The position numbers and the translations under genes were made by a program. DNA of 64,000 nucleotides. It comes from Pavona decussata. Its lineage: Eukaryota. The notes beneath the pieces were generated by a model that was given only the letters and a program-made list of their open reading frames with translations, searched no databases and had not been told where the DNA came from. This document shows, one piece after another, positions 9,301 to 64,000 of this stretch (its first letter is position 1; each line of letters opens with the position of its first letter). The DNA lies in contig CDRNST010000241.1 of the NCBI GenBank assembly GCA_977016875.1, positions 992,001 to 1,056,000 of the forward strand. Reading direction: 5' to 3'.

Positions 9301-12300
9301 TCAAGATGTTGAGATATTGGCCAAATTCAGAATCCAGACAACAGGATCAATATCCCATCTTATTTATTGAGCAAGCATGGTCAGTATTGAAGGAAATGAT
9401 TTAATTTTCATGGAACTTAAGTTGAAACCACGAGTATTTCCACGGCTGGGTGAATCTTTCCTTCTTTGACAAAACAATTTGTCACTAGAAGTCATCAGTA
9501 GAACTTTAACATGAATACTATTGTGTTTTGTTACATTATGAAAAATTGGTACTTAAATGAACATACTTTTCTTATGGGTCCAAATAGTTGTGAACTATTA
9601 ATAATTATTGTATTTTAAATATAGTGTCCTGCTTACACAAAAGGAACCTACTTGGTGTCGCTTTAATGGTTCATTGTGTTAATTTATTAAAGGGAAATTT
9701 CTAGAATTAAGAAAACCCTTCACAAATATTTCAAAATTTCCATATAAAATTAAATGTGAAATTGAAAAACGAAAAACAAAAAAACAAAAAACAACAATAA
9801 AAAAAACAGTTCACTTTGTGTCAGAAACTAAATGCACTTAAAAGTATGTACAGTGTACACTGTGAATTAACTGTAAAAAATGGCTAATGATTAATTAATG
9901 AATAATTGGATTAACAAAGTTTTCAAAATTATTGATTAGAGTAGTAACAGTCAAGCCCTAACAGCCTTTTCCGGGTCCATAATGATCACCTTTTTGTAGC
10001 GGCCTTGTTTTCTTGTCCCCTGATTTCCAATCGATTTGCTCAAACAAAAAATGTTTATCAAAACCTCCTGGACAAAGGCAGCTAATGTAGAAAGGTTTAA
10101 AACTGTATCTTATGTAAAAAACTGTATGCAGAAACATTTGCATCGCAGTGCAGTGTCAGTGCCGACATTTATGGTATGCCACAATGTGGTCCAAGTTGAT
10201 TTTAAAATCAAGTTTTACTTTCTTTGAAGGTTAATGTGCGAATTTTGGATCTTTATGAGGAGCTGCGAGATGGGAATAATCTTTTATTACTGTTAGAGCT
10301 TCTTTGTAAAACAAACTTGGTAAGTTTTGGTAAAAAAAGTTTGCAATAACAAGTTACTTAAAATCATTAATCAATTGAAATGGTTTAATTAGGATTCTCT
10401 TCCCATAAAACCCCTGCTGGGTCATTCATTTCTTTTACAACAGGTCAGCAGGGGTTGTGTACATTCAAACACAGCATTTGAAATTAATACGATGAGGTGT
10501 TTATTCATGCAAATATAGGTTATAGTACTCTCATCCTCCATAGTAAAATTCAAATGAAGAGTAAACTAAAGAGTTGCTCCTACAAATTAATTTTCTTGGT
10601 TCACGTTGGGGGTGGGGTGGGGTCTAAATTTCTCCTTCTCTATTAATGTTTTAATCCCCAGTATCAACTTGTTTATTCCCCTCTCCATTCTCAATACATT
10701 TCTTATGGTGCAAAAGAGGAGAATTTGTATAAACATTGAGGCATGTTTCTTTGATGATCATTTCCTTTAACCTCATGTCCTGCTGTGTGTTTGATTCTAA
10801 CAGCAGTAGTGATATGTAGTCTGAAATGTCAGCCGTCCCCTCCCCTTAACCTACAGGGGGCGCGGGAAAGAGAGACTCCCATGCCCCCTGTGTTTTAGGG
10901 GGAGGAGACGGCTGACATTTCAGACTAGTAGTGATATTGAGGAGAAAATAATAATATTGAATCCTTTTGGGGCTTGCAGGGTTAAATGAGCCAAACTTTT
11001 TAAACGAAAGTATAAAGCTAAACTGAGGGTCGTACAGGGGTATTTTCGTGATGCGTGATTAGCTGATTTATTTCCCATGAAACGCGAATGTAATAAATTA
11101 TTCTTCGTAATCCGTGACCTGAAGGTTTTGCGTGACCCGAGAAGAGCTTGAAAATGAAATTTTCATTTCCGTGATCCGTGATTTGCTATTTTTTCTGTTC
11201 GTAAACGGTGCAAGAGACTCCCCCTGTACGACCGTCTAAACTGTAAGTCCCAGATGGACAGGGCTCAAACTAAAATACCCTCCCTTTGAGCTGTAATGAT
11301 ATTTTCAGGCAGAACACCTTACCTCAGGCTGTGTAAGTAAACCTGCCAATTTACAACTGTAATTTCTTCAATAAAAGATAGTACTGTAATTTGATTGTAA
11401 ATGGAAGAAAGATGCTGATCATCCCAGTTGATTAGTTAGTGCTTTTGTTATTCAATTCAATTCTCTTTTTGTTGCCTTTTAGCCAAGAGAGAGGGGACAG
11501 TTGAGATTTCATAGACTCCAGAATGTCCAGACTGCACTTGAATTTCTTCAGTCTCAACAGGTAAGCTGCAAATATGACTTGATCAACCTTCAAATGTCAA
11601 GGGGACACTGTAACAGCCAGCTAACTAGTTTTGTTTTCATGTTAGGTTAAACTTGTAAACATCCGAAGTGAAGACATAGTGGATGGCAATCCTAAACTTA
11701 CCCTTGGATTAATATGGACAATCATCTTGTACTATCAGGTCAGAATATTCATTTGGCTATCTTCTTTTAACCCTATCTAGACCAGGAGGGCGGATTTTAT
11801 TACAGTTGATGTGATGTCTTACAAGATTTTATCAACTTAATAAATGTAGATGTAGTAGATGTAGATTCTGCCCGCGGCAAATTTGAACCTGATTTATATT
11901 TTAATATTTGAGCAAACGCCCTGAAACTTCAGGACTTTTCCAAAATTTATCTGCAGGGAAAAATTTGATGTGGTTGTGGGTGTTGATTGAGTTTGATGTT
12001 ACCATGGCAAGCCATTTTTGACAGGCAATTTTTTCAGAAAATAGAAACCCTCTTTTTAAAATGAAGAAAAATCACTTTTCTTCCCGCAACGTTTATGTTT
12101 TTAGCTCATATTAGTGTTCCTTTACTAGTTTTGATTACTTTCTGTTCAATTTTGGCTGATCCTGAAGTTTTGGGAAAATCCAGAGATCCAAAATGGTGGA
12201 TCCAAGATGACTGCCATTTGGCAATCATGACCTAATTAGCACGTCATAAGATGATGTTATCGCTTTGCATTGCAGACCTCAATGGTGACATCTTTGGATG

Positions 12301-15300
12301 TACTATCTGTCCTCCAAACCTCACTGTCACAGCTTAAATTATACTTGCAAAGTTATGGAGGAAATGAATCCTCATTGATTTCTTTTAAAACTGATCAGCA
12401 TGCCTTTAACAAGTGTCAGTCCTTCCTCCTTCTCATTAAGTTGTCGGCAGAGATTGATATTTGCTGGTTTTGATCCTTTTTCAAGATTTAGAGGTTAATA
12501 TGTTCTTATGCATGCAAAATGTTATCATGGCTCTTTTCAGCTATCTTGAAAATCTATTTGAATGTTGAGCTTTTATTTTAACCATGCATGTTTTTTATGC
12601 AGATTTCGGAGGTGGAGGTTGTTGGAAAAGAGGAGCAAATGACTGCTAAAGATGCACTTCTTCTGTGGGCTAAAAAAGTGACTCAGGGGTATGTCACAGT
12701 TACAACTCATTTCCTGTTGTACCAGTTGGGAGAATCAATCCATGCAGATCTAAGGGTGATGGAATCTAAAAGGGGCACTTTTTGAATTATCCTCATAGCT
12801 AAGGATACCAGGAAAAAATTTGATGGGAAAAGGAACTTCTCGTCAAAGTTTGTACACCCATAGGGAGAAGAGGAAACGAGAGCCACGCCCTCAAATTGAG
12901 ATACTACAGCCCATGAGGGGTGCTTTTCAAAATTTCTGATAAGCAACAGGGCTGTCTGCCCCTGGGATGATTTCCTAATGCCAATAACACATTTTAACAT
13001 AATTGGAGACTTTTTTAGAAAGTGCATTTAAAGGTTAAGTATGGTATGCCAAGTACCAGGACAATCAAAATTTTTGCAATTAATATTGAATTGATGATAC
13101 AACTTTTATATTTTGCTTCAGTTATCCTTCAGTTGAAGTGGAAAACTTCACAAATTCATGGAAAGATGGGTTGGCTTTTAATGCAATCATTCACAGATAC
13201 AGGTCAGTTGATTATCACACTTACACATTTTATCTTATTTTACAGGAACATTTCATTTTTTTTTTTTGAAAAAAAAAAAAAATAAATAACAAAAAACTAA
13301 TAAAAGGAAGTCCTTGTAATTTTTTGTTTGGGTGTGGTCAAGCCATCAAGAGAGATTTTACCTTATCTGATCAGGAATTCCTTAACCTTTGCATCTGATG
13401 GTATCAAAATTGAAATTACATATCCTGTGCAGGATTTCAAGAATTATTTGAATTTGGAACTGGGTGTTGGATGAAGTGTTATTTTTTGTGATCTCAAAAT
13501 GCCTGCACAAGAAGCAAAAATTGCAAGCACAGAAATCTTTATATAATTTTCGAGTTTTTAGATACCATCAATGAAGAGTTAAAGAATGAAAACTATTTTT
13601 TTAGTTTAAGTTACTATTGCAGTACTTGGAGATTCAAGTTCTGCTTAAAGCTCTGCTTATTAAACCATGTAGACGTCCGTGACTTCCTCCTAAACACTGC
13701 AGACACTTAAAGTGTTGACTGTTGATTTTTTGTCGGTAAAAATTCCTCAGACAATATAGTGTTTTGACCTTTTAAAAGCTAATACCACAAGAAGGATAAT
13801 TATGTCGAATCCAAATGATTTACAATGACATTTTAATTGCTCTATGGCTATCCATTAGAGCAAGTTTCGTTGACCTTGAAATGATTCTACCAGAACAAAA
13901 CCCAGACAGCAAACAAACTGCAAAATCAAGCTTTGATTTGTTAAGTGAATTAACAAAAGCAAATGTGTGCACATGACTGTTGGCTGGTTTGACCTATTAC
14001 CCAAGAGCATTTTAGAAATCAATCTTTGACAATTAACACTCCGTTTTCAGCAAATTGATTGTTCAGTGTAATAATGCTTCAGCAATCTGATTTGTCAAGT
14101 GAACAATGTTTGTTACATAATAATGTGTTCTTTAGCGGAATAATGAACAAAACAAGGCCTCGTTTTGATCATTTGTACCAGTGATGGATGAAACAAATAA
14201 CAAACACTTTAGTGGAAACCATATATTTCAAAATGAAATGAAAATTGCTCCATCATTGAACAAAATGTGGAAACTTAAACTGTGTCAGTAGCATAGTCAG
14301 TCAAATAAAGGGAATCTCCACTGTTGCAAGGAATTGATGTTAAGTTGATGGAAACAATGTCCAAATTCCACATTTGTTTGAACACAAGGAAAGAACAAAC
14401 AAAATAAATATAATATGATAACATAATTTTCTATTTTTGCTTTTAAATTTCCCATTCGCCATTGGCTTTTATGACATCATACAGTTCTTTTTTTTCTTAG
14501 GAAGCAGATGTTCTTTGCTGTATTTAATAGTTGGGCAACCATATAACATCATGAAATCCAAATGGTGGTGCATGGGAAAATTAAAAGTGAAATTTAGTGT
14601 TAGTTTAAAATCCTGTTTTGTCCGACTCTGAAGTATGATTTCCAAGTTTCGCAATTGATGGAAATTGAGATAAGATGGTATTCTCAATAATTTAATGTTG
14701 GCCCTTTGTTTCACAAGTGTAGGTGTACTTTAAAATAAATCAATTCGAAGGATTGTTAACATGAATTTCCTGTAATCACCAATGACAGGCCCGATCTTGT
14801 GGACTTTTCCAAGTTAAGCAAATCAAGCCCGGAGCAAAATCTGGAATACTCATTTCATGTTGCGGAGAAAGAACTTGGTGTTCCCAGGCTCCTGGATGTT
14901 GAAGGTACTTGTTAACTATTTTAATTATTTTATTAATAATTTTCCTATCAGGCTCTAGTATCATGATGGCTCATGTTTATCAAGGTGGCTGACTTGCACC
15001 CACTCCCTGGGATGTGAACGTTTCTTCCCACCATTGATGGTTATCAGAATTTTGAGTGGGGAGACCAAAATATTAGACTTACTTTTCAAGTGCTGCATGT
15101 CAGAGCTCCTCCTACATCATGTCATCTTTCTTATGCTAGAACCATATGCTGCCCGTTTTAGGATCGCTGTAGTGTTAGCGGTAGTGTTGTAATCTAGGTA
15201 GCATTTAGAAGTATAATTGTAAGTGGTTTTTATACTGCACGTTTAATTTTTCACGGGGGGTGTATCATTAGAATTCCAAAAGATCAACTGCAACACTCTT

Positions 15301-18300
15301 CTGAAAATACAGTGTAGTGCGATTGTTGCCAATCCTCAACTTTGTTAATGATCAGAAGAATTCCTCACTCAGCTGTCAAATTGTGAATGGCAATCTCAGG
15401 CCCTCTACAGATCTCAATACAGCAGGAATAACTATAAAAATAAATTAATAATATAGTTTGGTATGGAATTGTTCATTTTTTATTCTACATTATTTTTAGC
15501 TCATTCAAAGTAATGTGAATGCCATTAGTGAAGCTCTGACACATGCATAAAATTTTCTCTTTTATTAGATTTGGCCCACACAGACCATCCCCCAGATGAA
15601 AAGTCTATCATGACTTATGTTTCTTCTTTGTATGAAATATTCCCGAAAGAACCTACAGCACAAGAAACATTGCATGATAATGTAAGTAACATTGATGCGA
15701 TAAAAGACACTTCCCAGGTAGTATATTTAAATAGACTTGATAGAGGAGCTACACATGTAAATGCCTCAGAGGACCATGACTGGGAAATGGACAGGGCGGG
15801 GTAGGGACATTTGACAAAGGTTCACCTGGAGCTGGTTTTGTGAAATTACTTTTCTGTGTTAAAGGTTCCACTTTCCATCAGAGTCTTAATCCAGTTATTA
15901 ATTTATAACACCTTTCTTTTGTAGGAAAAGCTGTTTAAGTTTGAAGAATATTGCAACCTGGCAAAGGTACTTGTTGCCAGCATCAAACAAGTTGTGCTCA
16001 GGCTGGAGAAACAAAGGTTTCCAAAAACTGTCCAGGGAATAAAGGTTGGTAAAATACTTTGTCATTTGAATTTGATACTATATACTACAGTGTTGTCGAT
16101 GTCATAACTATAACTCAACCTTATTAACTCTCACATGTAGTAACTGGATAAAGTATTTCTGTTGAAAATATTTTCAGGAGCTGATAGTTGAGTACAATCG
16201 CTATCGCATAAGTGAATTCACCGACATGGAAGCCTCTAGACATTCTCTGAAAATGGTTTTCCGTGAACTCCAGGTAAGTATTGGTTATTATTCTATTGTT
16301 ATAGATGTTAACTGCTCAGTTGAGTTATGCAGAAGATCAATTCTTTTGTTGTTTAAGAAAAATCACTAATTTCATTTTAGAAAGTTGTGGAGGAATCTAG
16401 ATTGTTGCTACCAATATTTGAAGTGACTCAAAAGACATCTCCCTGGTTGCAATTTTGAGTTTATTACTTTTTACCCATGTGCTTTGAGAATTGGCCATTT
16501 CCGAGTTGCTTTGCACCTCATTGTGAAACAGAGGCTTTGTGCATAGTTTTTGCCATGAAATTAAGTTTTCGTTCACATGAAAACAAAATTTATTTTCATA
16601 TGAAAAGCTTTGCACTTGGCCTCGTTTTCGTAATAAGGTTCAAAACAGCTCAGAAATGGCCTATTTAAACATTGCTGTTGTCAAGCAGTGTTATTTAGAA
16701 AATAGTAACATTTCAGTGCAGCTTTTGTTGATCCAGTTCTGATAATTTTGGAATCAAACAGTAATGAATTATTTTCTCACTGTTGTGGAGGCATAGCAGT
16801 TCAGTGTTTAGTGCATTGGATGTCAGATCTGAGGTTGGTCACTTCCTTAAACAAGACACTTTACTCCACACTGTCTTCCTTCACCTGTAGGTCGGTAAAT
16901 AGATACCATCCACATACTGCTGGGGGTAACCATGGGATGGACCAGTAATCAGAGGGGGGGGGGGGGGGGGAGAGGGGGTGGAATGGCAATACTTCCAGTT
17001 TCTTAATGATACAAAAGCCAGGTCAAGCTCTTGTTGTGTAGGTCACCTATAGCTTGGCACTGTATAGTGTATGGTCCTTTGTTGCACCATGTGGGTGACC
17101 TGTGGCTTTTGTACATGCCTTCTGTTTTTTTTCTTACCATCAGGCACTGTATGGTCCCATGGCAACCTGGCTGGAATTTCCGTATGAATGTAGTCCGAGA
17201 GAGTTAGAAGTGGTAAGGATTGTTTGTCCTTTGTGTGCCATAAAAAATTTGACATACAGTGTATGCTTTCTATAGAAGCACTTACAAAATGCCAACTGAT
17301 CAAACAGGGAAATTAGGGACAAACAGGTCATGTGCTTCATGAGGTGCGTGCCAGTCCTCAAGAAGTCTTATTTCAAAGCCAAGGTCCTTGGTTTAGATCT
17401 GTATCCATGGTGGACATGGATGTTGTCATGGCATAACAAAGGTTGGCAGAAGTTTGATATGTTTTCAAGGACAAAAATAGTAAACTATGCAAATCAGTGG
17501 GGGTTGGATGGTGTTGAAAATGAGGAGCCAAGCTCCTTTGATTATGTTCTATGGTGAAGACTTGCTGGGATGGTACTGGTGGTAGTTACTGCAACACTAA
17601 GTGTGGATTAAATCATCGTAATGGAGGATTATAATCAATCCTCAGTTAGATTCTGTTGCTAAGACCTCAATACTAATCTAGATTAAGGAAAGGGTTTAAT
17701 TTCATCCACCCAATAAGGTTGATTTACGTAATTATCAAGGGAATGGAGTTTGTCAAAGCAAGCAAAATGCTTTCAAGAAGCCTCTTTTTATAAATGGATT
17801 AGTTATCCGAGAATGAAGAATAACAAATTTAATCTTGGATTTACTGCCATTTGACGGCTCATTAATTTTAAAATCAGCTTTGTGGGAACCTCTACCATTA
17901 ACAAAATCAACAAAATAATAAGGTACATGTAACCTTACCATGGACAGGCGTCATATTTCTGGTGCATTTTATCACCATTGTCTTTCACAGCACATGCGAA
18001 TTTGTGTTCAAAACATATTATTAAAAAATATGCTTGTTGTCTCCTCACAGTTATGGACAAATCTAGTTGAGATGCAGGATAACTACAACAAATCACTGAG
18101 AATTGAACTTACCAGGTTATCTAATGATCTTGTTCATTTTTTTTTAAACGAGTAGACTGAATACAGTAACTGAAATTTGTTGTTTCTTTATATAAATAAG
18201 AAACCACCAGCAGCTTAGCAAGGTACATCAAGTCTGTCTTTTGGCTTACTAAGTCTTGGTTTGAGAAAATTATTGTTAAATCAGTTCAGTTGTGCAATTT

Positions 18301-21300: not shown

Positions 21301-24300
21301 ACTAACCCTCTTATAAATTCTGATTGCTTGTGATATGGTGCCTGTGTTGTCAGGGTTCAGTCCATTGAAAGACGTTGGTCAGAGATGAAAGATCGCCTGG
21401 ATGCACGCTCCACTAAAATGCTCACTTATCAGACGTACAGTACAACAGACGGCAAGAAGATGAAGCTGGAGCTCCCTGTGGAAAAGACGGTTGTATCAAC
21501 AGAAGAAACGACACCAACCACTGATTACCTTGAGGGGGAGGGGGTAAGGACAAGAAGAAAAGTCATTACTATCACAAAGAGGACGTACCGCTCCTCAGGA
21601 GGGACCCCAACAGAAACGAGAACAACTGTTGCTCGCATCATGTCTGCGGAGGGCTTAAATGACGGTAAGTGAATAAAATCTAGAAATAGAAGTTTGGAAC
21701 ACACCAGAAAGTACTGTAATGATTTTATTTAGCGTCCGCAGTCCATTAAACCGTGCACCCCCTTCTAATTTATGATAAGCGAAGATATCTACACATTGCA
21801 GGTTTTTCTGAATCCAGCATAGTTCATGTAGGACTACTCTTGCTTTTCCAAAGATACGGCAATTAAGAGCCACGGATGCATCCTTCTGGCCATTATCCCG
21901 GCAAATAATATCCATGCCTTTTGCGACATGGAAAATGAATTTTTTTCGAAATGTTGTTTGCTTGAGGTATGTTCACAAAGCAACATTTGAGTAAAGATTT
22001 TGAACGAGCTATACATTGAGATAGACAGGCCTTTTTCTTTTCTTATTTCTTCCACTTTCTTTTTTGCTTTTTTTGGCCTTTCACTCGCCATACTTTTCAC
22101 AACGTTTCCACTTGATTTTCGGGAAATGTGAAAATTTTCAATCCAAAGTGCCAATGGAAAAGACAAGTTTCTCTTCGATTTTGTTAGAAAAACTCTCAAG
22201 TTTAATATTGTGTACCTCTCTGTCCCAATTTATTTTATCCTTGTTATTGAGGCATGCTTGGTTGTAAGACTTTTTCCGACTTTACTGGTTGGTTGCCAGA
22301 AACATCTTCTGGCTGTAAAACTGTTGACGTTACAAGGGCCCATGTCTCCTTGAAGGCGGTGTAAGAGTCAGGGAGTTAAAACAGAAATACGCGCCCTGTC
22401 TCCGATAAGGGGCGTCCTCTCTTGTAAGGCGTTACATTCCATCTTTCAGTACTGTATGCGCTGCGTTTTCAACCGAGAGCGCATAAGTGTGTGCGGAATC
22501 TCAGCTTAGATTGCAATGCTATCCCTCTTAAGTTATTTCTAATACAAAAGTTTTTTTTCTCGAACTGCAGACACAGGTGACAGCGGTATTCCGAATGGAG
22601 CCTCGCCCCATGGGCGTAATCAACTGAAATTCAGCGTGGAAACTGGGAACGAGTCTCAGCGTTTGGATGCGATGCTAGCTTGGATAAGAGAAACGAGGGT
22701 ATGGATGAGTAGACCAGCCAGCCATGTGAAATGACTTGTGCAAAGTTTTATTAGAGAAGTATTTTTTGTGATGCTCGACGAAAGATGTTTCTGATGAAGT
22801 TCGAGGGATTTTCCTCCATTGAAAGACATTCAGTGGACATTTTATGTACTTTCGTGCATCTGTTTTTAATACACTATTAAGAAGATAAGTACGTTAATTA
22901 TGATCATCCAGGTGATTGCATTAGTTCTGAGAACACAATGTAACCTCAAACAATCCTTCTCAGGACTATACTCACCCGAATTATCATAATTTATGTACTT
23001 ATGACATGACTCCTGGGTTCAAATCATTTACAGAGAAATATTTTTAATCATAAATCGCGTTTGAACATTTTTGATACGAAGCAGCGTCCTCTAATTTGAT
23101 CAGAAAGATCTTTTGTCATGATATCTTTCAAGTTTCAAGTTTACTCTGGGAAAACTATTTCACTCGGATTTCTTCTGCCTTTATAGTCACGGTTCCTTGC
23201 ACTTGCTTGCTTCGCGTTTTCAAAATAGAGAAACAAACGTGTTCTCCTCCAAGCTAAGAATAAGGTTTATTTTCAGAAGAAGATTCGAATTCCCTAGCTG
23301 CGGCTAAACGAATATTTTGTTTTCTCGAAAAAGATCATCTGAGCCAGTTTGCAAAATTCAACTTTGTATTATCAAATAACTGATAATGCGAAGTCATTTA
23401 CCGAGCAAATTGTATTCACGCCACATATTTGTGGTTTCTTGGCTGAAGGTGTTTCTAAACACTGACTAATAACCTCACAGCAGGTGACCGTTTTATAAGA
23501 ATTTGTATAATTCATTGGGTATTTACATGCTAGCTTTGCGTTTTGGCAAAGATAGTGCAAAGCTATTTACACAACTGCTTTAGGTTTTGGCAAAGACGGA
23601 GACAAACATAAATTTGGCAATGTTTTTGCACGCAATATTGTAAGAATTTTGTTTTTCGGTGGAAGTCAATGCCTATAGGCAACTGTAATGTTTTATGCGG
23701 TGGATGAAGCATAGCTCTCTTGGACGTAAGAGCATTTTCTTGCAAAAACAGGTATTATAATTGACACGATGTTTTGAAAAGGTCTTGGCAAGAATTTAAA
23801 TTAAGGCATATCTGCCTTCAAAGCAAAGCGCATAGCATCTTAGGTCCTCTCGAGTTTACCGTTATAAGTAGCATTTCGCTATAATTAACTAACAACAACT
23901 TAAAACAAATGGTACTAATTGAAGTGCATATATAATCCTTTATCATGCTTGTTAATGATGCACGATACTTATTAACCTACCTGAAGTTTTTCTTTTTTGT
24001 TTTTTGTTATCAAACTGAGTCAGTGTGTTTCGAAGTACGAATTCATATCTCACGGTTCTTTAAATTCTTTTCGGTGTCAGAAATATATTGAAACGGTTAA
24101 AGTTGTTTAAGTTGAAAGTGAAGCATGGGATGTTGATAATTTACACGAAGAAAATGGTTGTCGTGACCGTTAATGATACCGACTTTTTTTTTCAACCAAC
24201 CGCAAGAAGTGCTCATGCTGCGAATTTTAAGGAACAAGCTTGAAAAGTTCATCCTTCTTCTTTCAAATTTAATCACCGCACTGTCCCTTTAGGCAAAGTA

Positions 24301-58700: not shown

Positions 58701-61700
58701 TGTTTGCATCTGAATGAAAACTAATTTTCATGTAAAAGCGTTGCATTTAGCCTCGCTTTCAGAATGAGGTTCAAAGCCACTCGGAAATGGCCTATTAGTT
58801 AAAACAGAAATGGAGATTTAGAAATAAATTAAAAATATAAAAAGACATTAAAACTCTGTCATTCAACAGGTATTAGATCCGGAAATAGCGTGTTTGAATT
58901 ACCAGCTTGAGAGTGCAAACGAATCTGGGCAGGAGGTAATCGCTCATCTGCAGGACACAGCTCAAGACCCGAGCCCCGTTGTACACAAAGTGGACGGTAT
59001 TAACAGCCAGTGGAACCAGCTTCAAGCTAGACTGAGAGAGTTACGAAATCACGTTAAAGACAAGGTAAGCCCAGAAAGGATACGTTTTCTTTCATTATTT
59101 TTTTTGAGAGGAGTGTTCAGGTTAGTTTTGTAGCTGGCGTTCTTGCCAGAAAGTGTCCCATGTAGGTTATGTCACGGTCACGCTGTTTGTGTCACGCTGG
59201 TGTGTCACGTTTGCCGCCTGTTTGTGGAGCTGGTTAGCTACGAGCTGTGGTTCAGGTGAATACCTCTTTTTGTATAATTTAGTTCATTCTTTTGCTTACG
59301 CTCGGACATTACAGTCCGCCTACTTACAGTATCAGCGTTATTTAAGAGTTCAGTAGTCAACAAGATCTTCAGACGACTATGGAGTGTTGGAGCTCTAGAA
59401 CCCCGGAATCTTGTGCCCCTCTTCTTCTTTCAAAGCTCCGTTTGGAACATACGCCCGAGACCTTTGATATAGCGCCCTGGTACCAAACCATTTTTCATGC
59501 TTATTCACATGGCAACGGTGAAACGTCCTCGATGTCTCCAGAATGTTGATTTGTTTTACTTTGTCGCGAGACACAAAGCCCGCTTCTTTTGATAAGATTA
59601 TTTTTTATCATCTATCTGTAAATGTTAATCCTAATAGTTAAGACTATTATATCTCTCGTATTCTAGTTCACATTTTATTTATTTTATTTTTTTTGTTTTG
59701 TTTTGTATATGTGTTTCTTTTAATTCTGCTCGAAAACACTAGCTATCAGCTTCTCTCAAATTCAAGTGAAAATAAAGTTTATGTATGCATGTATGTAAAA
59801 CATTGAAATTAATGAGATACCCGTCGGTGAATCACGTTGGTTATAACATTTCCTTCTTTAATTGAATGGGAACTATTGTGGTATTAGACAAAGAAAAAAA
59901 AAAGCAATAGTGAGACAAAGAGAAGCTGTCGCATTCAGTGGAATTAGATTGGAGTTTGCTAATTGTCAAATCTTTAGATTTGTTTTTTTTTCTCATTGCG
60001 CAATAGTCGTTACAGATAAGTGAGCAGTCAATATATTTAGCATGCGATTTTCGATTCAATACCAGTACTCTCATGCTAATTATGTTTTGTCGGAGACGTT
60101 GCTGTCGACAGTCAAATGAGAACTCGTTCAAATGAACATCTCTGTCGTCGAGCGGGTTTTTGGTTTCTTCAGAAGGCGTGGGAAAGCCGTGAGTTGACTT
60201 CTTAATTACTTTATTTTCCCCCAGAGTAACTGAACTTCAACTAGTTTTGAAAATATTGCTTTTGTTTTTTTTTGTCAATGGAAATTTTATTCGATTCGAT
60301 TGGAGAAAGAAACCTCGTGACTGAACCCTGTTTATGGTTGTAGGATTTAGAAATCATTTCTAACGGGAAGGCAACAGATTACTACTCCTTACCAGGCAAA
60401 TTTCTTCTTTCACGTTGCGACAATATCTATATTTACGAGAGGTGCACATGCACCCTTGAAAGTAAAATATTCAATTTTTAATTAGTTTGCCATCTTCTGG
60501 CGGCAAATTAATGCTCTTAGATTTCGTCTTGGGGCTTAAAATAGAAACGTGTTGATCTCTGTTCGTGCGTTGAGTTTATTTCTTGTTGACCTGACTCGGT
60601 CACGGCTGCTTGCTTGCAAAGCGTAGTTTCTTTTCGCTGTATTGATTGTTTCGCAAAATATTCACTTCGATAGTAGCCCCATGAGTATTGCTCATGAAAG
60701 AGTTGATGTTGCTAATGCAGGAGAATGTGTATTGCCTATTCGTTTATTTTACGTTTTATATATTATATTTCTTCATTTTACGTTTCAAGAAAGGCAGTAT
60801 TTTCCTTTCTTTCAAAAAACTGCGCCTGGTACTTTGTTTATTTATAGAGCATTGAACAGTCTAGTAATCACAATATATTTAAGCACAGATCTTTTCAGAA
60901 AAGGTCGGAGAAGAGAAGGTACTTTTTGTAAAAGGATTTAGTTGAAGATATTGTTTAATTGTTTGTCTTCTTTCAAAGTTTGGTAGTTTCTACACAAATA
61001 AAGTTAAAAAAAAATTGACTTAACTAATTGAAGGTACACAGACACAAATGTATTTCCTTGATATTACAAAAGTTTTAAAAAAGTGTATTCGGTATAGCTC
61101 ATCGCCGTAGATTACCAATGCGAAATTGCTAAAATCTAGGTAATTATTCAGCTTGTCAAATGGTGTGGTGCCGCAGGGCTCAAACTGTCTCTTGTTTACA
61201 ATTGAAGAAGACAGTATTAATTTAAACGTTGGCACGCAGCATATATTATGTTATTGTCGTTATTCCGAACAGAGCGAAAATTAAGGGGCCGTCGGTGTAA
61301 GATATGGAGGGTTTGTTTATCGCGCAACTTATCTCGCTTCGGACTTATATGATTAGAGTTCATTGGACGATTAACTGACATACTCGATATTTTGTTGAAT
61401 CTTTAGGGCGATGAATCCAAGGAGGACGATTCTACCGTTCCATTTAAGGTTACAAACGTGAAAAAGAGCAATCTTGAGAGATTCGAGATCCCTGTATCAG
61501 TGACATTGGAAGCAGAGCCTGTTGAAAGTACACGTTCAAAAGGAGAACTGCCTGCGAGACCATTCGAATTAGGAAAACCTGTTTCAAGAAGTTCTGACAG
61601 TGATGGGAGCCTAGAAGACAAATTAGCTTTCAAAGTCACCACGGTTAAAAAGGGTACTGTAGAGGGATTTCACATTCCAGTTCCCAAAAAATCCCAACCA

Positions 61701-64000
61701 GATACCGGGGAAGAAGAGACAGACAAGGATGAGGGACAGTTCGAGTGGGGAAAACCGCTTCTCGGTGGCTCTTCCGATGAAGAAGATTACGGAGACGAAG
61801 ACGGAGCAGTGTTTAATGAGGTGAGTATTCCTTTAGAGCGCTCGGTAAGAAGGATAAAGAAACCAGACCAAGAAGTTATCGAAGAGTACGTCGATGACGA
61901 AGGTCGTCGGGTGAAGAGGATTTCAAAGGTAACAACTACCAGGACAATAACAAGAGTCGAGCGGCAAACACCCAGGCATGAGTTGGCTATTGATGTGCCT
62001 GCCGAGCCAGGGGAAGACGTAGAGGAGTACGTTGATGAACACGGCCAGAGGGTGAGAAGAGTTGTACGGACTTCTGTGACCACAAGTACCAAGACAGTAC
62101 TGAGAGATGGGGCCTTGAAGGTTGTACTGACACCTAGAGATTCTGGTCGACAAGAGCTTGGAGATGGACCCGAAGATACTGAGCGAATTCAGATCTTCAC
62201 CTCGGAGCACGGTCACCGCACACAAAAACTCACTAAGCCTACACTGAAAAGTCAGCTGAAAAGACCCACAGAATCCGTGACAGTGAAAATGCCACAAGAA
62301 ATGGCCCAATCTCCAGACGATGATGCACGAGCTGAAAGGATCGAGAGAACGGTGTCTTACCCAGAGTGGCTTGTATCCGTCAAAGAAAAGCCTCCCACCC
62401 CAGTCTCGATTTCCTCAATTCAGATTGAGCGACATACGCCGAAGTTACCAACAGTGCGTGATACTGAGAAACCGCATGTCATAGAGGAAGTATCGGCATC
62501 TATTATTGAAAGGCATCCGCCAGTGATTTCGCTACATGCTCTTGAAGACGAAGAGGAAACTCCTGCGGTACGTGAGCGTAAAAGAGCAGAGCCTCCAGCG
62601 GGTTTGCCCCAGTCGCCCGAAATACCGAGAAAAAAGGTACAAAGGGAAGTAGCAGACGATAAGGTCAGTAAGACAGATGTGTTCTTACCCACTCCTCCAA
62701 CAGCGCAAAAGGCCGAAGAGGAAATGGAAGTGGAAGATGAAAAGGAAGGTGACGAACCAATGGATGAAGATGAGGAAGAGGACGATGAAGAAGAGGATGA
62801 CGAATTTGATGAAGAGATCGTAATAGTAGAGGTTAAAAGGCGTCCAAGTTTTCCCAGATCGTTTGTTGTTGTCCCGGATGAACCTGAAATTCCATTCGAA
62901 CCTAAAAGTCTTGCTTACCCGATGAAAACCACCCGCAGTTTTTCCCAGACAAGGAAAATGCCAGAAATGCAAGAAGACTTATCTTGTGTAAATATCGACA
63001 GAAAGGTCACAATTCCTGAGCTAAGGGAATCTGACCTTTTGTCGGCAGAAGCAGATGATCAGACATCGGGGGAGGTTGAAGAATATGTTGATGAGAATGG
63101 CGTTCGAGTGAGAAGAATTGTGAAACGAACCATCACAACAAGATCTGTAATCCGTACATCTGTTGATGGCCAAAGAGACGAGCCACAACCAAAGATATTT
63201 GAGTCAGCAGCTCCTGTTTACCTAGAGATGGACGCTGAAGATGTGGTACCTTCATTGCAAACTCGAGAAATTGTCCTTCCTGGATGGATGGTCGAATGTG
63301 AACCAACACCAGAAGAACAAAAGAAGCCTCAAGAAGAAATTTCATGGTTAGTGCTACCGTCTGAACCAAAACAAGATGAGCCTAAGGAAGAACGTGACCG
63401 CGACAGCGTGAGAGAAAGCGTTACTGCAACAAATTTAAATCGGGAAATTGTTATTCCTCAAATTGATGACATGGAAGATGAGTCAGCCCAGGAAATTGAA
63501 GAATATGTTGATGAAAACGGAGTGCGAGTAAGGAGAATTGTGAAACGAACTATCACAACAAGAACTATCAAGAGAGAAGGTCAACAGATTGAACCAATGG
63601 AGCTGACATTCCCTGTAACGCAAAGACGGGATCAGTCACCAGAGGAAGTTGAAGAATTTGTTGATGTGAATGGTGTTCGAGTGAGGAGAATTGTGAAACG
63701 AACCATCACAACAACATCTGTAGTCCGTACATCTGTTGATGACAAGAGGGAAGAACCGCAAACAAAAGTATTTGAGTCCGCTGCTCCTGTTTACCTAGAG
63801 ATGGACCCTGGAGATGTTGTACCTTCATTGCAAACTCGAGAAGTTGTCCTTCCTGAATGGATGGTTGAAAGTGAACCAACGCCAAAAGAACAGAAGAAGT
63901 CTCACGAAGAAATTTCATGGTTAGTACTGGCGTCTGAACCAAGAGAAGATGAGCGTAAGGAAGAACGTGACCGCGAGGGCGTGAGAGAAAGCGTTACTGC
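6257..64000 (+). CDS. MACF1: Spectraplakin (MACF1/dystonin/plectin/short stop family), multi-exon, 3'-incomplete: CH1-CH2, plakin domain with SH3, spectrin repeats, giant repetitive exon
   Basis: Hand-spliced exons give [114 protein letters not shown] and W-containing spectrin repeats. The symbol is family-level only (likely co-ortholog of MACF1/DST/PLEC). Confidence 0.95.
7555..7636 (+). CDS. Spectraplakin alternative first exon 1b ([27 protein letters not shown])
   Basis: aaatATGG start context; phase-1 donor CAG|gtaatt in frame with exon 2. Confidence 0.75.
8048..8109 (+). CDS. Exon 2, CH1 start ([21 protein letters not shown])
   Basis: tttcag acceptor, gtaagc donor, canonical CH1 motif. 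Confidence 0.95.
8771..9024. repeat. Tandem duplication, 2 x 127 bp
   Basis: caaatactaagttaaa... begins at 8771 and 8898. Confidence 0.9.
10230..10319 (+). CDS. Exon 3, CH1 ([30 protein letters not shown])
   Basis: AG/GT boundaries, DLYEELRDG motif. Confidence 0.95.
10817..10927. mobile_element. 111-bp hairpin element with ~10-bp flanking duplication
   Basis: tagtctgaaatgtcagccgtc ... gacggctgacatttcagacta; gtagtgatat on both sides. Confidence 0.8.
11025..11236. mobile_element. 212-bp MITE with 16-bp TIRs and 6-bp TSD (TAAACT)
   Basis: gagggtcgtacagggg ... cccctgtacgaccgtc. Confidence 0.8.
11483..11560 (+). CDS. Exon 4, CH1 ([26 protein letters not shown])
   Basis: AG/GT boundaries, RFHRLQNV motif. 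Confidence 0.95.
11646..11738 (+). CDS. Exon 5, CH1 ([31 protein letters not shown])
   Basis: Actinin-type actin-binding signature. Confidence 0.95.
12603..12688 (+). CDS. Exon 6, CH2 ([29 protein letters not shown])
   Basis: AG/GT boundaries, AKDALLLW motif. Confidence 0.95.
13122..13202 (+). CDS. Exon 7, CH2 ([27 protein letters not shown])
   Basis: Phase 2/2, NFT.SW.DG motif. Confidence 0.95.
14789..14904 (+). CDS. Exon 8, CH2 (PDLVDFSKL...[14 protein letters not shown])
   Basis: Phase 2/1, LGVPRLLD motif. Confidence 0.95.
15569..15681 (+). CDS. Exon 9, CH2 end ([26 protein letters not shown]...)
   Basis: [10 protein letters not shown] motif, gtaagt donor. Confidence 0.95.
15925..16044 (+). 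CDS. Exon 10, plakin SR1 ([14 protein letters not shown]...[11 protein letters not shown])
   Basis: Phase 0/0; RFP motif as in plectin SR1. Confidence 0.9.
16178..16273 (+). CDS. Exon 11, plakin SR1
   Basis: ttttcag acceptor, CAG|gtaagt donor, phase 0/0. Confidence 0.9.
16381..16445 (+). CDS. Exon 12, plakin SR1 ([18 protein letters not shown]...); 3' boundary uncertain (16422, or 16445 with a frameshift)
   Basis: Acceptor ttcattttag; needed to bridge exons 11 and 13; see frameshift finding. Confidence 0.65.
16491..16665. mobile_element. Palindromic ~170-bp MITE family, copy 2
   Basis: ggccatttccgagttg ... cagctcagaaatggcc. Confidence 0.8.
16785..17045 (+). mobile_element. Degenerate tRNA-derived SINE
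   Basis: tRNA-like head, then acaagacactttactccaca ... ctgggggtaacc ... gatggac ... G-run layout typical of anthozoan SINEs (recognised from memory). Confidence 0.5.
18051..18115 (+). CDS. Exon 13 ([22 protein letters not shown])
   Basis: Aligns with plectin WGKL...LRSEFER. Confidence 0.9.
18590..18632 (+). CDS. Exon 14, SR2 ([14 protein letters not shown])
   Basis: Phase 2/0, in frame. Confidence 0.85.
18846..18896 (+). CDS. Exon 15, SR2 ([17 protein letters not shown])
   Basis: Phase 0/0, gtgagt donor. Confidence 0.85.
19091..19458. mobile_element. MITE
   Basis: ggctaaacgatcaaaca ... tgtttgatcgtttagcc inverted ends. Confidence 0.7.
20148..20222 (+). CDS. Exon 16, SR2 ([25 protein letters not shown])
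   Basis: Phase 0/0, gtaagt donor. Confidence 0.85.
20365..20453 (+). CDS. Exon 17, SR2 ([30 protein letters not shown])
   Basis: Phase 0/2; resembles plectin DVQTLKDGRHPQ. Confidence 0.88.
20471..21020. mobile_element. 550-bp non-autonomous DNA transposon (TA-flanked, Tc1/mariner-like)
   Basis: ta|ccgtgtagcacgaaaattttgcggg ... cccgcaaaattttcatgccacgcgg; subterminal tttgcg repeats. Confidence 0.8.
21354..21664 (+). CDS. Exon 18, SR2 end plus Thr-rich linker
   Basis: Phase 2/1; overlaps ORF 21385-21672. Confidence 0.88.
22571..22698 (+). CDS. Exon 19, linker and SR3 start (...[13 protein letters not shown])
   Basis: Phase 1/0; LAWI helix A motif. Confidence 0.88.
24349..24477 (+). CDS. Exon 20, SR3 ([18 protein letters not shown]...)
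   Basis: [WY]G.DLPS motif. Confidence 0.92.
24534..24842. mobile_element. MITE
   Basis: agggaacttaagca ... tgcttaagttccct. Confidence 0.8.
25295..25357 (+). CDS. Exon 21, SR3 ([21 protein letters not shown])
   Basis: Phase 0/0. Confidence 0.85.
25692..25724. repeat. (AAC)11 microsatellite, probably a retroelement 3' tail on the minus strand
   Basis: Directly followed by actttatt (minus-strand AATAAA). Confidence 0.8.
26265..26426 (+). CDS. Exon 22, SR3/SR4 (...[21 protein letters not shown]...)
   Basis: Conserved plakin motif ATKEL.W.N..EE.EV..DWS. Confidence 0.95.
27013..27117 (+). CDS. Exon 23, SR4 (...[17 protein letters not shown])
   Basis: HPA motif. Confidence 0.93.
27165..27341. 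mobile_element. Palindromic ~170-bp MITE family, copy 3
   Basis: catttccgtgttgctgtgaacctc ... gaggttcaaagcaacacggaaatg. Confidence 0.8.
27849..27944 (+). CDS. Exon 24, SR4 ([16 protein letters not shown]...)
   Basis: Matches plakin A.QTQWSW.LQL. Confidence 0.93.
28295..28522. mobile_element. 228-bp TIR element with perfect 11-bp TSD (GCAGAAAAGGT)
   Basis: accctggttccagagg ... cctctggaacctagggt; TSD at 28284-28294 and 28523-28533. Confidence 0.85.
28709..28834 (+). CDS. Exon 25, SR5 ([11 protein letters not shown]...LDRLT)
   Basis: Phase 0/0, gtgagt donor. Confidence 0.92.
29682..30301. repeat. Polypyrimidine (C/T) low-complexity tract with internal repeats
   Basis: Almost no G on the + strand; recurring ccattccctccttcaccaccccctcccctc units. 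Confidence 0.95.
32265..32912 (+). CDS. Candidate internal alternative first exon with N-terminal transmembrane anchor (216 codons)
   Basis: Long, compositionally complex ORF in the largest intron; 27-aa hydrophobic segment followed by basic residues; phase-0 donor CAG|gtaaac (alternative CTA|gtgagt at 32924) matches exon 26. Confidence 0.7.
35214..35360 (+). CDS. Exon 26, SR5/SH3 start ([10 protein letters not shown]...VVPLPQRK...VCSYKNMQ)
   Basis: Plakin V.L.PR...CDYK motif. Confidence 0.93.
35642..36358. repeat. Tandem duplication, 2 x ~357 bp, near-identical
   Basis: aatttccaagtttgtattaagttc begins at 35642 and 35999. Confidence 0.95.
36798..36860 (+). CDS. Exon 27, SH3 ([21 protein letters not shown])
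   Basis: GEEC.L.DNS...WK motif. Confidence 0.93.
36938..38091. mobile_element. 1.15-kb non-autonomous hAT-like element
   Basis: cagggctgcaaataac ... gttatttacagccctg; subterminal (t)gaccggaca motifs; no clean 8-bp TSD. Confidence 0.8.
38631..38722 (+). CDS. Exon 28, SH3 end (...[15 protein letters not shown])
   Basis: VPSVCF.IP motif. Confidence 0.93.
39715..39841 (+). CDS. Exon 29, SR5 end / SR6 start
   Basis: [12 protein letters not shown] aligns with plectin LEAQHQALVTLW. Confidence 0.9.
40590..40781 (+). CDS. Exon 30, divergent SR6 region
   Basis: Phase 0/0; ORF 40581-40808. Confidence 0.85.
41118..41470. repeat. Long imperfect palindrome (foldback element), ~170-bp arms, 15-nt loop
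   Basis: ...atgctccaatgactccatataaatccttctaattttgt [loop] acaaaattagaaggatttgcatggagtcattggagcat... Confidence 0.9.
41611..41736 (+). CDS. Exon 31, spectrin repeat (SR7)
   Basis: LLAWLKRAE helix A. Confidence 0.9.
42601..42755 (+). CDS. Exon 32, spectrin repeat (SR7)
   Basis: Phase 0/2, LSEKW helix C. Confidence 0.88.
43416..43554 (+). CDS. Exon 33, SR8
   Basis: Phase 2/0. Confidence 0.88.
44104..44406 (+). CDS. Exon 34, SR8/SR9
   Basis: [11 protein letters not shown]...QIDNR aligns with plectin RERVAQLLERW...QTDVR. Confidence 0.92.
44585..44867. mobile_element. MITE
   Basis: ctacaatcctg...tcttgggacaaa / tttgtcccaaga...caggattgtag. Confidence 0.75.
45103..45186 (+). CDS. Exon 35, SR9
   Basis: Phase 0/0. 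Confidence 0.88.
45560..45784 (+). CDS. Exon 36, SR9 end (end of plakin domain)
   Basis: NARYEKL...ETLKR aligns with plectin RTHYSEL...ETLRR. Confidence 0.9.
46125..46265 (+). CDS. Exon 37, rod spectrin repeat
   Basis: [10 protein letters not shown]...LEEQIEEQK. Confidence 0.92.
46588..46857. mobile_element. GC-rich TIR element with a nested 88-bp hairpin element (46700-46787)
   Basis: agccttcgtagctggc ... gccagcttcgcaggct; inner tagccttctcgcagacgctctt ... aagagcgtctgcgagggaggtta. Confidence 0.7.
48615..48860 (+). CDS. Exon 38, rod spectrin repeat
   Basis: Phase 0/0, LEARWGRL. Confidence 0.92.
48926..49227. mobile_element. PIF/Harbinger (Tourist-like) MITE with TTA TSD
   Basis: 31-bp perfect TIR agccgccgttacacgttgaaacttttagctg; tta on both sides. 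Confidence 0.9.
49457..49549 (+). CDS. Exon 39, rod spectrin repeat
   Basis: AWLKRAE, phase 0/0. Confidence 0.9.
50476..50559 (+). CDS. Exon 40, rod spectrin repeat
   Basis: [24 protein letters not shown]. Confidence 0.9.
51345..51530. mobile_element. MITE
   Basis: tatagagtgttttca ... tgaaaacactctata. Confidence 0.8.
51726..51868 (+). CDS. Exon 41, rod spectrin repeat
   Basis: [11 protein letters not shown], phase 0/2. Confidence 0.88.
52293..52482 (+). CDS. Exon 42, rod spectrin repeat
   Basis: LPWLNSAE...[13 protein letters not shown]. Confidence 0.92.
53465..53779 (+). CDS. Exon 43, rod spectrin repeats
   Basis: Phase 0/0; ORF 53516-53839. Confidence 0.9.
54433..54711 (+). CDS. Exon 44, rod spectrin repeats
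   Basis: Phase 0/0, gtgagt donor. Confidence 0.9.
54754..54983. repeat. Minisatellite, ~59-bp unit x ~4
   Basis: gaaatggggctggtatattgacacag unit at 54755, 54814, 54872, 54931. Confidence 0.9.
55176..55564. mobile_element. Kolobok-like MITE (TTAA target)
   Basis: ttaa|aggggcagtgtcacg ... cgtgtcagtgcccct|ttga. Confidence 0.7.
55676..56002 (+). CDS. Exon 45, rod spectrin repeats
   Basis: VNKNWQAL...LWLDNME...PVGLDPD. Confidence 0.92.
56131..56469 (+). CDS. Exon 46, rod spectrin repeats
   Basis: [18 protein letters not shown]. Confidence 0.92.
57297..57407 (+). CDS. Exon 47, rod spectrin repeat
   Basis: LQKEITQNQ...AGNDLL. Confidence 0.9.
57587..57983. mobile_element. Kolobok-like MITE (TTAA target)
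   Basis: ttaa|ggacggtgcct ... aggcaccgtcc|tcaa. Confidence 0.7.
58334..58540 (+). CDS. Exon 48, rod spectrin repeat
   Basis: Phase 0/0, ERQKELE. Confidence 0.9.
58627..58796. mobile_element. Palindromic ~170-bp MITE family, copy 4
   Basis: gaacctcattatgaaagcgaggctaag ... tcggaaatggcc. Confidence 0.8.
58870..59064 (+). CDS. Exon 49, rod spectrin repeat
   Basis: [11 protein letters not shown]|gtaagc donor. Confidence 0.9.
61407..64000 (+). CDS. Giant exon (>=864 codons, runs off the window): E/P/V/R-rich, repetitive, probably largely disordered
   Basis: Acceptor aatctttag, phase 0 matches exon 49; hand translation shows no stop codon up to 64000. Confidence 0.88.
63075..64000 (+). repeat. 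Coding tandem repeat, 573-bp (191-aa) unit, >=1.6 copies
   Basis: gagagaaagcgttactgc ends at 63427 and at 64000. Confidence 0.95.

Follow-up and report, generated by a model that had tools for sequence, protein, structure and literature searches.

A giant exon near the end of a 64,000-nucleotide stretch of the Pavona decussata genome (GenBank assembly GCA_977016875.1, contig CDRNST010000241.1, positions 992,001 to 1,056,000; the window) carries 15 copies of a short acidic-turn-basic motif and, judged from its sequence and splice phases, is an integral, in-phase part of a cnidarian spectraplakin (MACF1/dystonin/Shot type), placed between the plakin domain and the rod. Taken as a whole, the exon is best explained as one whose array of putative beta-hairpins acts as a multivalent docking scaffold, a reading that we hold with somewhat better than even confidence. 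The spectraplakin gene type was already known; what is new is an undescribed, lineage-wide hairpin-motif insert in the cnidarian members of the family. The exon had been singled out in a first-pass annotation of the window, whose claims are taken up below where the evidence bears on them. Positions are counted from the first letter of the window and continue in the same numbering past its end. Searches were run exon by exon or with database proteins, and 20 kb downstream of the window were included.

The giant exon and its host gene

The giant exon occupies positions 61407..66983 on the + strand and thus extends beyond the window end. It comprises 5577 nt, or 1859 codons, with no internal stop codon, and is phase 0 at both ends: the acceptor lies at 61407 (tctttag|GGC) and the donor at 66983 (AAG|GTATTC), and the donor upstream at 59064 and the acceptor downstream at 68874 are likewise phase 0. 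The part within the window (61407..64000, +) was delimited by the open frame and these splice sites, and the interval 61881-63720, in which the motifs were first noticed, translates as a single open frame.

The host gene is a spectraplakin, as the first-pass annotation had proposed. Residues 33-2452 of the Nematostella protein model P0068 are matched in colinear order by 39 exons on the + strand (8047-59076). The N-terminal calponin-homology (CH) region is encoded by exons 8047-15681, which are colinear with P0068 33-274 at 64-88% identity, and P0068 itself carries PF00307. The plakin domain follows in exons 15925-59076, colinear with P0068 275-2452, where the Nematostella model carries PF17902 (SH3_10) and PF00435; the spectrin Pfam matches of single exons from this region are sub-threshold only. 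The last plakin-domain exon (58870..59064, +; donor AAG|GTAAGC at 59065, phase 0) encodes helix C of the final spectrin repeat and aligns to P0068 2383-2446, the last 64 residues before the insert of that protein, and P0068 passes from its last plakin-domain repeat directly into a motif-bearing insert. The putative join from 59064 to 61407 is phase-compatible and agrees with this Nematostella gene model.

On the other side, spectrin-like exons of the rod lie on the + strand at 68874-80165. Comparison with homologues indicates that the giant exon encodes about 1,790 highly charged residues and then the first rod helices, the first rod spectrin repeat starting in its last 70 or so codons. The last 165 residues align to residues 2643-2803 of a second Nematostella protein, P0012 (EDO37707.1 / A7SF37, annotated as a ‘predicted protein’), and enter its PF00435-labelled spectrin rod. 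The conserved tail of the exon (RYLVIIETLYQ...FNFVLENFLYWML...RPVSWKVDEIQ) ends the homologous open frames of many genomes and looks like the opening helices of a spectrin repeat whose remainder would come from the exon at 68874. An exon end near codon 1790 was considered and rejected, because in the homologues coding sequence remains conserved as far as the donor at 66983.

Motif copies and the tandem array

The motif is 25-30 residues long and consists of an acidic strand, an Asx-x-Gly turn and a long basic strand, with the consensus [ED]x[VI]EE[YF][VIT]D[DE]xG[RV]xV[RK]R[IV]V[KR]RT[IV]TT and four to six basic residues on one strand of each copy. The five copies claimed at first were found exactly at 61881, 62022, 63078, 63498 and 63651, but the number was understated: the exon carries 15, of which five lie inside the window and ten past its end. 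Two divergent copies are N-terminal, 12 are arranged in six tandem units and one follows the array, so that the proposal of a multivalent array is borne out on a larger scale than it was made. Each tandem unit is 190 residues long and holds two motifs, and the units are 77-79% identical in protein sequence to the first. At the DNA level the array has a period of 570 bp with 89-90% identity in a self-match of the genome; Tandem Repeats Finder, whose longest period is 500, overlooked it.

Within the window, the first, divergent copy (core at 61881) occupies 61869..61970 (+; 35.6 bits with a profile built from 63 motif copies) and the second (core at 62022) occupies 62007..62111 (+; 48.6 bits). 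Unit 1 (63063-63635) contains copy 3 as its first motif (63063..63164, +; 49.9 bits, placed also by the alignment of units) and copy 4 as its second (63489..63584, +; 51.2 bits, with a predicted hairpin of pLDDT 77-80). Copy 5 (63636..63740, +; 50.8 bits) is the first motif of unit 2, which extends past the window. With the same profile all 15 copies score 35.6-53.9 bits, and no further sequence exceeds 3.8 bits in 81 kb read in six frames. The DNA pattern EE[YF][VI]DxxGxR[VI] has 15 matches in the 602-Mb genome, all of them in the giant exon, and the reversed control of the pattern has 0 in the same 602 Mb.

A degenerate copy had also been claimed near 62197. The stretch is present (62187..62237, +) and BLAST pairs it with a true copy, the second motif of the paralogue P0028 described below, but it gives no score with the 63-copy profile. 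A similar stretch is retained in the homologue P0014, and this part of the exon may be a decayed copy of the motif.

Composition, selection and predicted structure

The exon is rich in Glu (15.8%), Val (11.9%), Arg (9.6%), Pro (7.7%) and Thr (7.3%), and its residues are 22.6% acidic and 14.8% basic, with a net charge of -145. The label ‘PEVK-like’, which the first-pass annotation gave to this region, is apt insofar as it denotes a long, charged, low-complexity segment with repeats, but it is loose, since Pro, Glu, Val and Lys together make up only 40.7% of the residues. The ratio of non-synonymous to synonymous substitution rates (dN/dS), computed among the six units, is lower in the hairpin motifs (0.27) than in the remaining sequence (0.49).

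The suggestion that the motif forms a beta-hairpin agrees with AlphaFold2 (AF2), which predicts one for the motif alone and for both motifs of a unit. Given 63 aligned copies, the isolated motif is modelled as a hairpin with strands at 4-9 and 15-20 and a mean predicted local distance difference test (pLDDT) score of 75.9, the five models ranging over 65-76. For one 190-residue unit, modelled with 18 aligned units, the mean pLDDT is 59.6 and the predicted template modelling (pTM) score 0.24; both motifs appear as hairpins with pLDDT 67-80, the linkers fall below 50-60, the long second strand (154-169) reaches beyond its hairpin, and the two hairpins are left unpacked against each other. On these models the segment would be a disordered polyampholyte scaffold bearing many small predicted hairpins together with other short linear motifs.

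A Pfam scan at E <= 1 placed no family on the exon, and scans of its parts, of the paralogue and of one homologue gave nothing meaningful. The absence of any plectin or plakin repeat profile from the scan of the exon is in line with the earlier remark that the segment is unlike plakin repeat domains. A Pfam label, PF27288.1, is precomputed on the homologues P0006 and P0059-P0065, where it stands beside plainly spurious labels (e.g., PF00159). Neither the motif nor the whole unit had a usable match in feature searches of the ESM Atlas. A Foldseek search of the unit model against the PDB found nothing at E <= 0.001, which is uninformative given the low confidence of the model.

Cnidarian relatives and a small paralogue

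A profile of the six units found 34 clusters among 1.84 billion representative proteins. Every cluster with a readable context is either the insert of a cnidarian spectraplakin or a small paralogue, several short fragments falling outside this reading of context, and no ankyrin and no recognisable bilaterian protein is among the 34. Most relatives are open reading frame (ORF) calls on ENA, JGI or Logan contigs that read into the intron past the same donor. The homologous open frames hold from 1 to 26 motif copies. The largest number belongs to Nematostella P0012, in which 26 copies are followed by spectrin repeats. P0012 and P0068 are neighbouring models on one Nematostella contig.

The insert can be followed further. 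On the contigs L037, L039 and L040 it is split over several exons, which plakin-domain exons precede and rod exons follow. Over the same plakin exon, the Pavona decussata sequence is 45% identical to this contig set and 63% identical to Nematostella, from which we conclude that the insert is older than the split between the Pavona decussata genome and Nematostella; the hairpin motif is kept across all three. These contigs also contain a different repeat, of 83 residues, with EEFTDDQGRVVRVVIVRTIVTRTV-type motifs. In this more distant cnidarian-like genome (L039:12265-14343 and L040:10001-14173) the 83-residue unit stands in tandem, with at least 16 repeats that each carry a EEFTDDQGRVVRVVIVRTIVTRTVIKNG motif. 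At the other end of the scale, the near-identical relative P0035, which differs by 1 residue in the last 60, has about 5 units and 12 motif copies vs 6 and 15 here, which indicates that the length of the array varies over short evolutionary distances.

Elsewhere in the Pavona decussata genome, a strict DNA pattern and a protein search found the motif only in a paralogue at C318:2882492-2883979 (+; L032:1021-2508). This gene encodes a small protein. A Cys cluster (CCCPCC) near its N-terminus directly follows an acceptor; then come a single hairpin motif, about 30 residues of poly-Asp and the motif EEEFVVMEVSRNPRFP. Members of the paralogue family have one or two hairpin motifs, a poly-Asp/Glu tract and a post-acidic motif, ordered as in the first 500 residues of the giant exon. 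The orthologues are 468-525 residues long and begin MKACIRWCCPCCLRGE (P0027, and the P0028 cluster with 32 members), and the Cys cluster of P0028 reads MKACIRWCCPCC. The C318 paralogue, which recalls small ankyrin 1.5, may carry the motif in membrane-anchored form by way of palmitoylation.

Resemblance to the obscurin-binding site of ankyrin

The motifs had been likened to the site by which ankyrin binds obscurin. Searched with the 63-copy profile, 177,635 distinct PDB sequences returned two matches at E <= 10, and the better was ankyrin-1 (7tw3_G), residues 1812-1832, with 12.4 bits and E = 0.81 over 21 residues. The last 83 residues of small ankyrin 1 are the C-terminus of ankyrin-1, and obscurin binding by small ankyrin 1 involves positive residues in R64-K73 and K100-R108, within a domain for which a beta-sheet model now supersedes the earlier ankyrin-like repeats (PMC11927728, 2025). 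In the numbering of that study, the aligned segment corresponds approximately to small-ankyrin residues 86-106 and overlaps both K100-R108 and the stretch E83-E93, which was flagged there as a possible contributor (PMC11927728). The likeness claimed at first therefore has this much in its favour, that the top PDB match overlaps a mapped obscurin-binding stretch; the match itself is insignificant, its score being at the chance level expected about once per PDB search, and homology is not established. As far as sequence comparison goes, the resemblance to the ankyrin site is real and common descent with it is unproven.

Both 21-residue segments contain acidic residues, an aromatic residue, the sequence D-E-x-G and an amphipathic basic strand. 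The ankyrin domain, whose basic residues bind, has been modelled as a beta-sheet, and the cnidarian motif is predicted by AF2 to be a beta-hairpin. A small, probably membrane-anchored version occurs in both systems, as small ankyrin 1.5 with its transmembrane helix and as the cnidarian paralogue with its Cys cluster. The hosts differ, the cnidarian motif residing in a spectraplakin and not in the C-terminal regulatory domain of an ankyrin, and so do the copy numbers (15-26 or more vs one to three ankyrin modules). The known site on obscurin for ankyrin binding belongs to a C-terminal region that is not known from invertebrate obscurins.

If the motif were truly homologous to the ankyrin OTBD, the array would be expected to bind obscurin/titin-type Ig giants, filamin or plakins. 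The mapped ankyrin-1 site does top an unbiased profile search of all PDB sequences, and the order of acidic strand, D-E-x-G turn and basic amphipathic strand is shared; moreover, reported partners of the OTBD include plectin (a plakin) and repeats 5-6 of filamin C, and small ankyrin 1 is reported, in work cited in PMC11927728, to bind titin Ig domains. Against homology, the score over these 21 residues is that of chance, phmmer searches of the PDB with two natural family members (P0016 and P0021) came back blank, and the 1.84 billion representatives yielded no ankyrin. A word search seeded on the EEYIDEHG copy (P0006 1395-1450) produced 7 candidates, and both of those reported are cnidarian ORFs; its E-values are scaled to 5.8 billion sequences, so that a single 21-residue match falls below the reportable level. 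The motif is also absent from every ZU5-bearing gene detected by a protein search of the Pavona decussata genome. According to a review, a vertebrate-specific, muscle-restricted module of the OTBD arose after the split from urochordates, and the three vertebrate modules are products of successive duplications (PMC2942773), which leaves a gap across the invertebrates. A short charged hairpin, finally, can arise by convergence. Weighing these points, we regard homology as unlikely.

A more specific evolutionary scenario, which we consider distinctly improbable, would make the cnidarian module the ancient source or the surviving sister of the vertebrate ankyrin OTBD, a cis motif of the plakin family having later been captured by ankyrins. 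Such a capture would explain why the OTBD binds plectin, filamin C and Ig-domain giants, and it would make the cnidarian array a direct way to reach the ancestral partner of the motif.

A proposed docking scaffold and its alternatives

In the mechanism that we propose, each motif would fold as a small beta-hairpin whose basic second strand offers the docking surface, and the array, as a multivalent scaffold, would collect an acidic or beta-strand-accepting partner in the linker between the actin- and junction-binding head and the rod. The motif might work in the manner of K100-R108 of small ankyrin 1, whose equivalent stretch contacts obscurin by its basic residues. One conceivable mode of binding, conjectured from the filamin C, plectin and titin Ig partners, would add a strand to beta-sandwich domains. 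The use of the array in a muscle or elastic isoform, which the first-pass annotation had suggested, is a conjecture, as is the binding of obscurin.

Several points weigh against this mechanism. The ankyrin-1 match is insignificant (E = 0.81). With a net charge of -145, the basic strands may be neutralised within the molecule. The confidence of the AF2 models is moderate and based on short sequences. Docking to a partner is proposed by analogy, and the inclusion of the exon is predicted from genomic sequence.

A chain of this kind might instead serve as an elastic or entropic spring, a charged, disordered segment in which the hairpins are sacrificial folds and no partner is needed. The high content of charged residues (37%), the low hydrophobic content and the disorder that AF2 predicts between the motifs all suit a spring, as does the placement of the segment in a force-bearing linker, in series with the head on one side and the rod on the other; the difference in unit number between close relatives (about 5 in P0035 vs 6 here) points the same way, as does the spread of 2-26 motif copies over the homologues. 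A pure spring, however, would not require the conservation of at least six distinct short motifs over large distances, and with Pro, Glu, Val and Lys at 40.7% and PPAK-type repeats not seen, the composition is not that of a PEVK spring. The small paralogue, moreover, reuses the motifs without a rod to stretch. We find a purely elastic role doubtful.

Alternatively, the basic strands (RVRRIVKRT) could bind polyanions such as tubulin tails or acidic membranes, which would make the exon an extra lattice- or membrane-binding region. The four to six basic residues gathered on one strand of each motif would favour such binding, and the Cys cluster of the paralogue (MKACIRWCCPCC in P0028), a plausible palmitoylation anchor, would put the motif at membranes. 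The exon as a whole, on the other hand, is strongly negative, an acidic strand of its own precedes each basic strand, and the Pfam scan shows no likeness to known microtubule-binding modules, so that we give polyanion binding a slim chance.

Self-association is very unlikely. Here the hairpins would pair into shared beta-sheets, bundling or dimerising the protein in place of the coiled-coil rod of plectin-type plakins. The predicted second strand, which outreaches its hairpin (154-169), might leave an edge free for pairing, and regions near the basic stretches of small ankyrin 1 are reported to mediate its oligomerisation (PMC11927728). Computation lends the idea no support: a homodimer prediction was neutral either way, and AF2 leaves the two hairpins of a unit unpacked (pTM 0.24). 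It is extremely improbable that the open frame lies outside the spectraplakin transcript as a nested gene, a repeat-derived pseudo-exon or an annotation artefact: although the evidence is genomic throughout and the database relatives are mostly ORFs called on genomic contigs, 1859 open codons stand between canonical phase-0 sites, the 3' end encodes spectrin-repeat helices that the next exon completes, the Nematostella models connect the insert to both flanks, dN/dS is below 0.5 and the frame is intact in many genomes.

Other conserved features of the exon and the locus

Besides the hairpins, the exon contains several conserved short motifs, namely [FL]ESxxPVxLE, LP[DE]W[LM], F-K-V-T-x-V-K-K, FEWGKPLLG and the post-acidic motif. 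Two copies of F-K-V-T-x-V-K-K lie near its start, the first (61437..61496, +) in the longer form F-K-V-T-x-V-K-K-x-x-[LV]-x-x-F-x-I-P and the second at 61623..61685 (+), and both recur in Nematostella P0012 and in L037. The FEWGKPLLG motif, followed by an acidic run (61740..61787, +), is conserved in P0029 and P0014. An acidic tract, which the first-pass annotation had put at about 62715-62817, is present at 62712..62816 (+) and comprises 35 residues, nearly all of them E or D. Directly behind it, the post-acidic motif (EEIVVMEV+R+P; 62817..62906, +) occurs in the same position in all relatives and in the small paralogue, and matches P0027 at E = 0.024. Within unit 1 are a [FL]ESxxPVxLE motif (63198..63233, +), whose E-S-A-x-P-V-x-L core is kept across species, and an LP[GE]WMVE motif (63276..63296, +), in which P73 is invariant and W75 nearly so in the cross-species alignment A2. 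The [FL]ESxxPVxLE motif of unit 2 (63771..63806, +) is placed by the same alignment.

Four further observations concern the rest of the locus and genome. A plakin-domain exon at 21352-21648 (+) contains a basic half-motif that is conserved in P0068 477-570 (...PRGTKKVITVTKRTYKS) and that receives no score with the hairpin profile. The open frame 32220-32930 (+) consists, at least over the interval 32511-32912, of ordinary conserved coding sequence from the plakin domain region of the Nematostella model, given its colinearity with P0068 879-1010 (60% identity). Simple repeats rich in Pro, Ser, Phe and Leu (PSSHPFLPKFPP-type) make up long frames, several of them open at once, at 29615-30332 (+) and at C318:2888302-2890484, and are probably intronic or intergenic satellite rather than coding sequence. 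Lastly, the ZU5 domain has 39 matches in the genome, seven of them in tandem on contig C77 (e.g., C77:639244-816312), which indicates an expanded family of ZU5 (UNC5 or ankyrin-like) genes.

The insert among known spectraplakins and its implications

In bilaterians, the plakin-repeat exon of MACF1b, dystonin-b and Shot separates the plakin domain from the spectrin rod. Like the cnidarian exon, it is a very large single exon with internal repeats at the same position in the gene; it differs in its content, which is 38-residue plakin repeats in globular modules vs short putative hairpins in a predicted disordered chain. Titin PEVK offers a second comparison. Both segments are long, charged, of low complexity and probably unfolded, with internal repeats, and stand in series with folded repeats. 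In titin PEVK, Pro, Glu, Val and Lys account for roughly 70% of the residues. Unlike it, the cnidarian exon has 9.6% Arg and 7.3% Thr, no PPAK or poly-E repeats and a predicted hairpin in its repeat.

The closest counterpart is the Nematostella gene represented by P0012 and P0068, which is orthologous by its gene order, its insert and its junctions to the plakin domain and the rod. Its insert differs in the layout of the units and holds mostly EEFVDEEGR-type copies, 26 or more in all, and the gene is split into two uncharacterised models. The motif strings are absent from the literature searched and from Pfam. The plakin-repeat module has been reported as arising in early Bilateria, and the Nematostella spectraplakin has been called ‘truncated’ (2022 study, PMC9145010). 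With the CH, plakin domain, insert and spectrin rod seen here, cnidarian spectraplakins appear complete rather than truncated, and their lineage-wide insert occupies the exact position of the bilaterian plakin-repeat exon.

Spectraplakins tie together actin, microtubules and junctions, and the insert supplies a peptide, well defined and repeatable, with which to seek partners in Nematostella. The insert also reopens the question of the origin of the obscurin/titin-binding motif of ankyrins. Were the two motifs related, the motif would predate vertebrates and the obscurin of striated muscle; were they unrelated, an acidic-turn-basic hairpin would clearly have been reached by convergence as a device for cytoskeletal docking.

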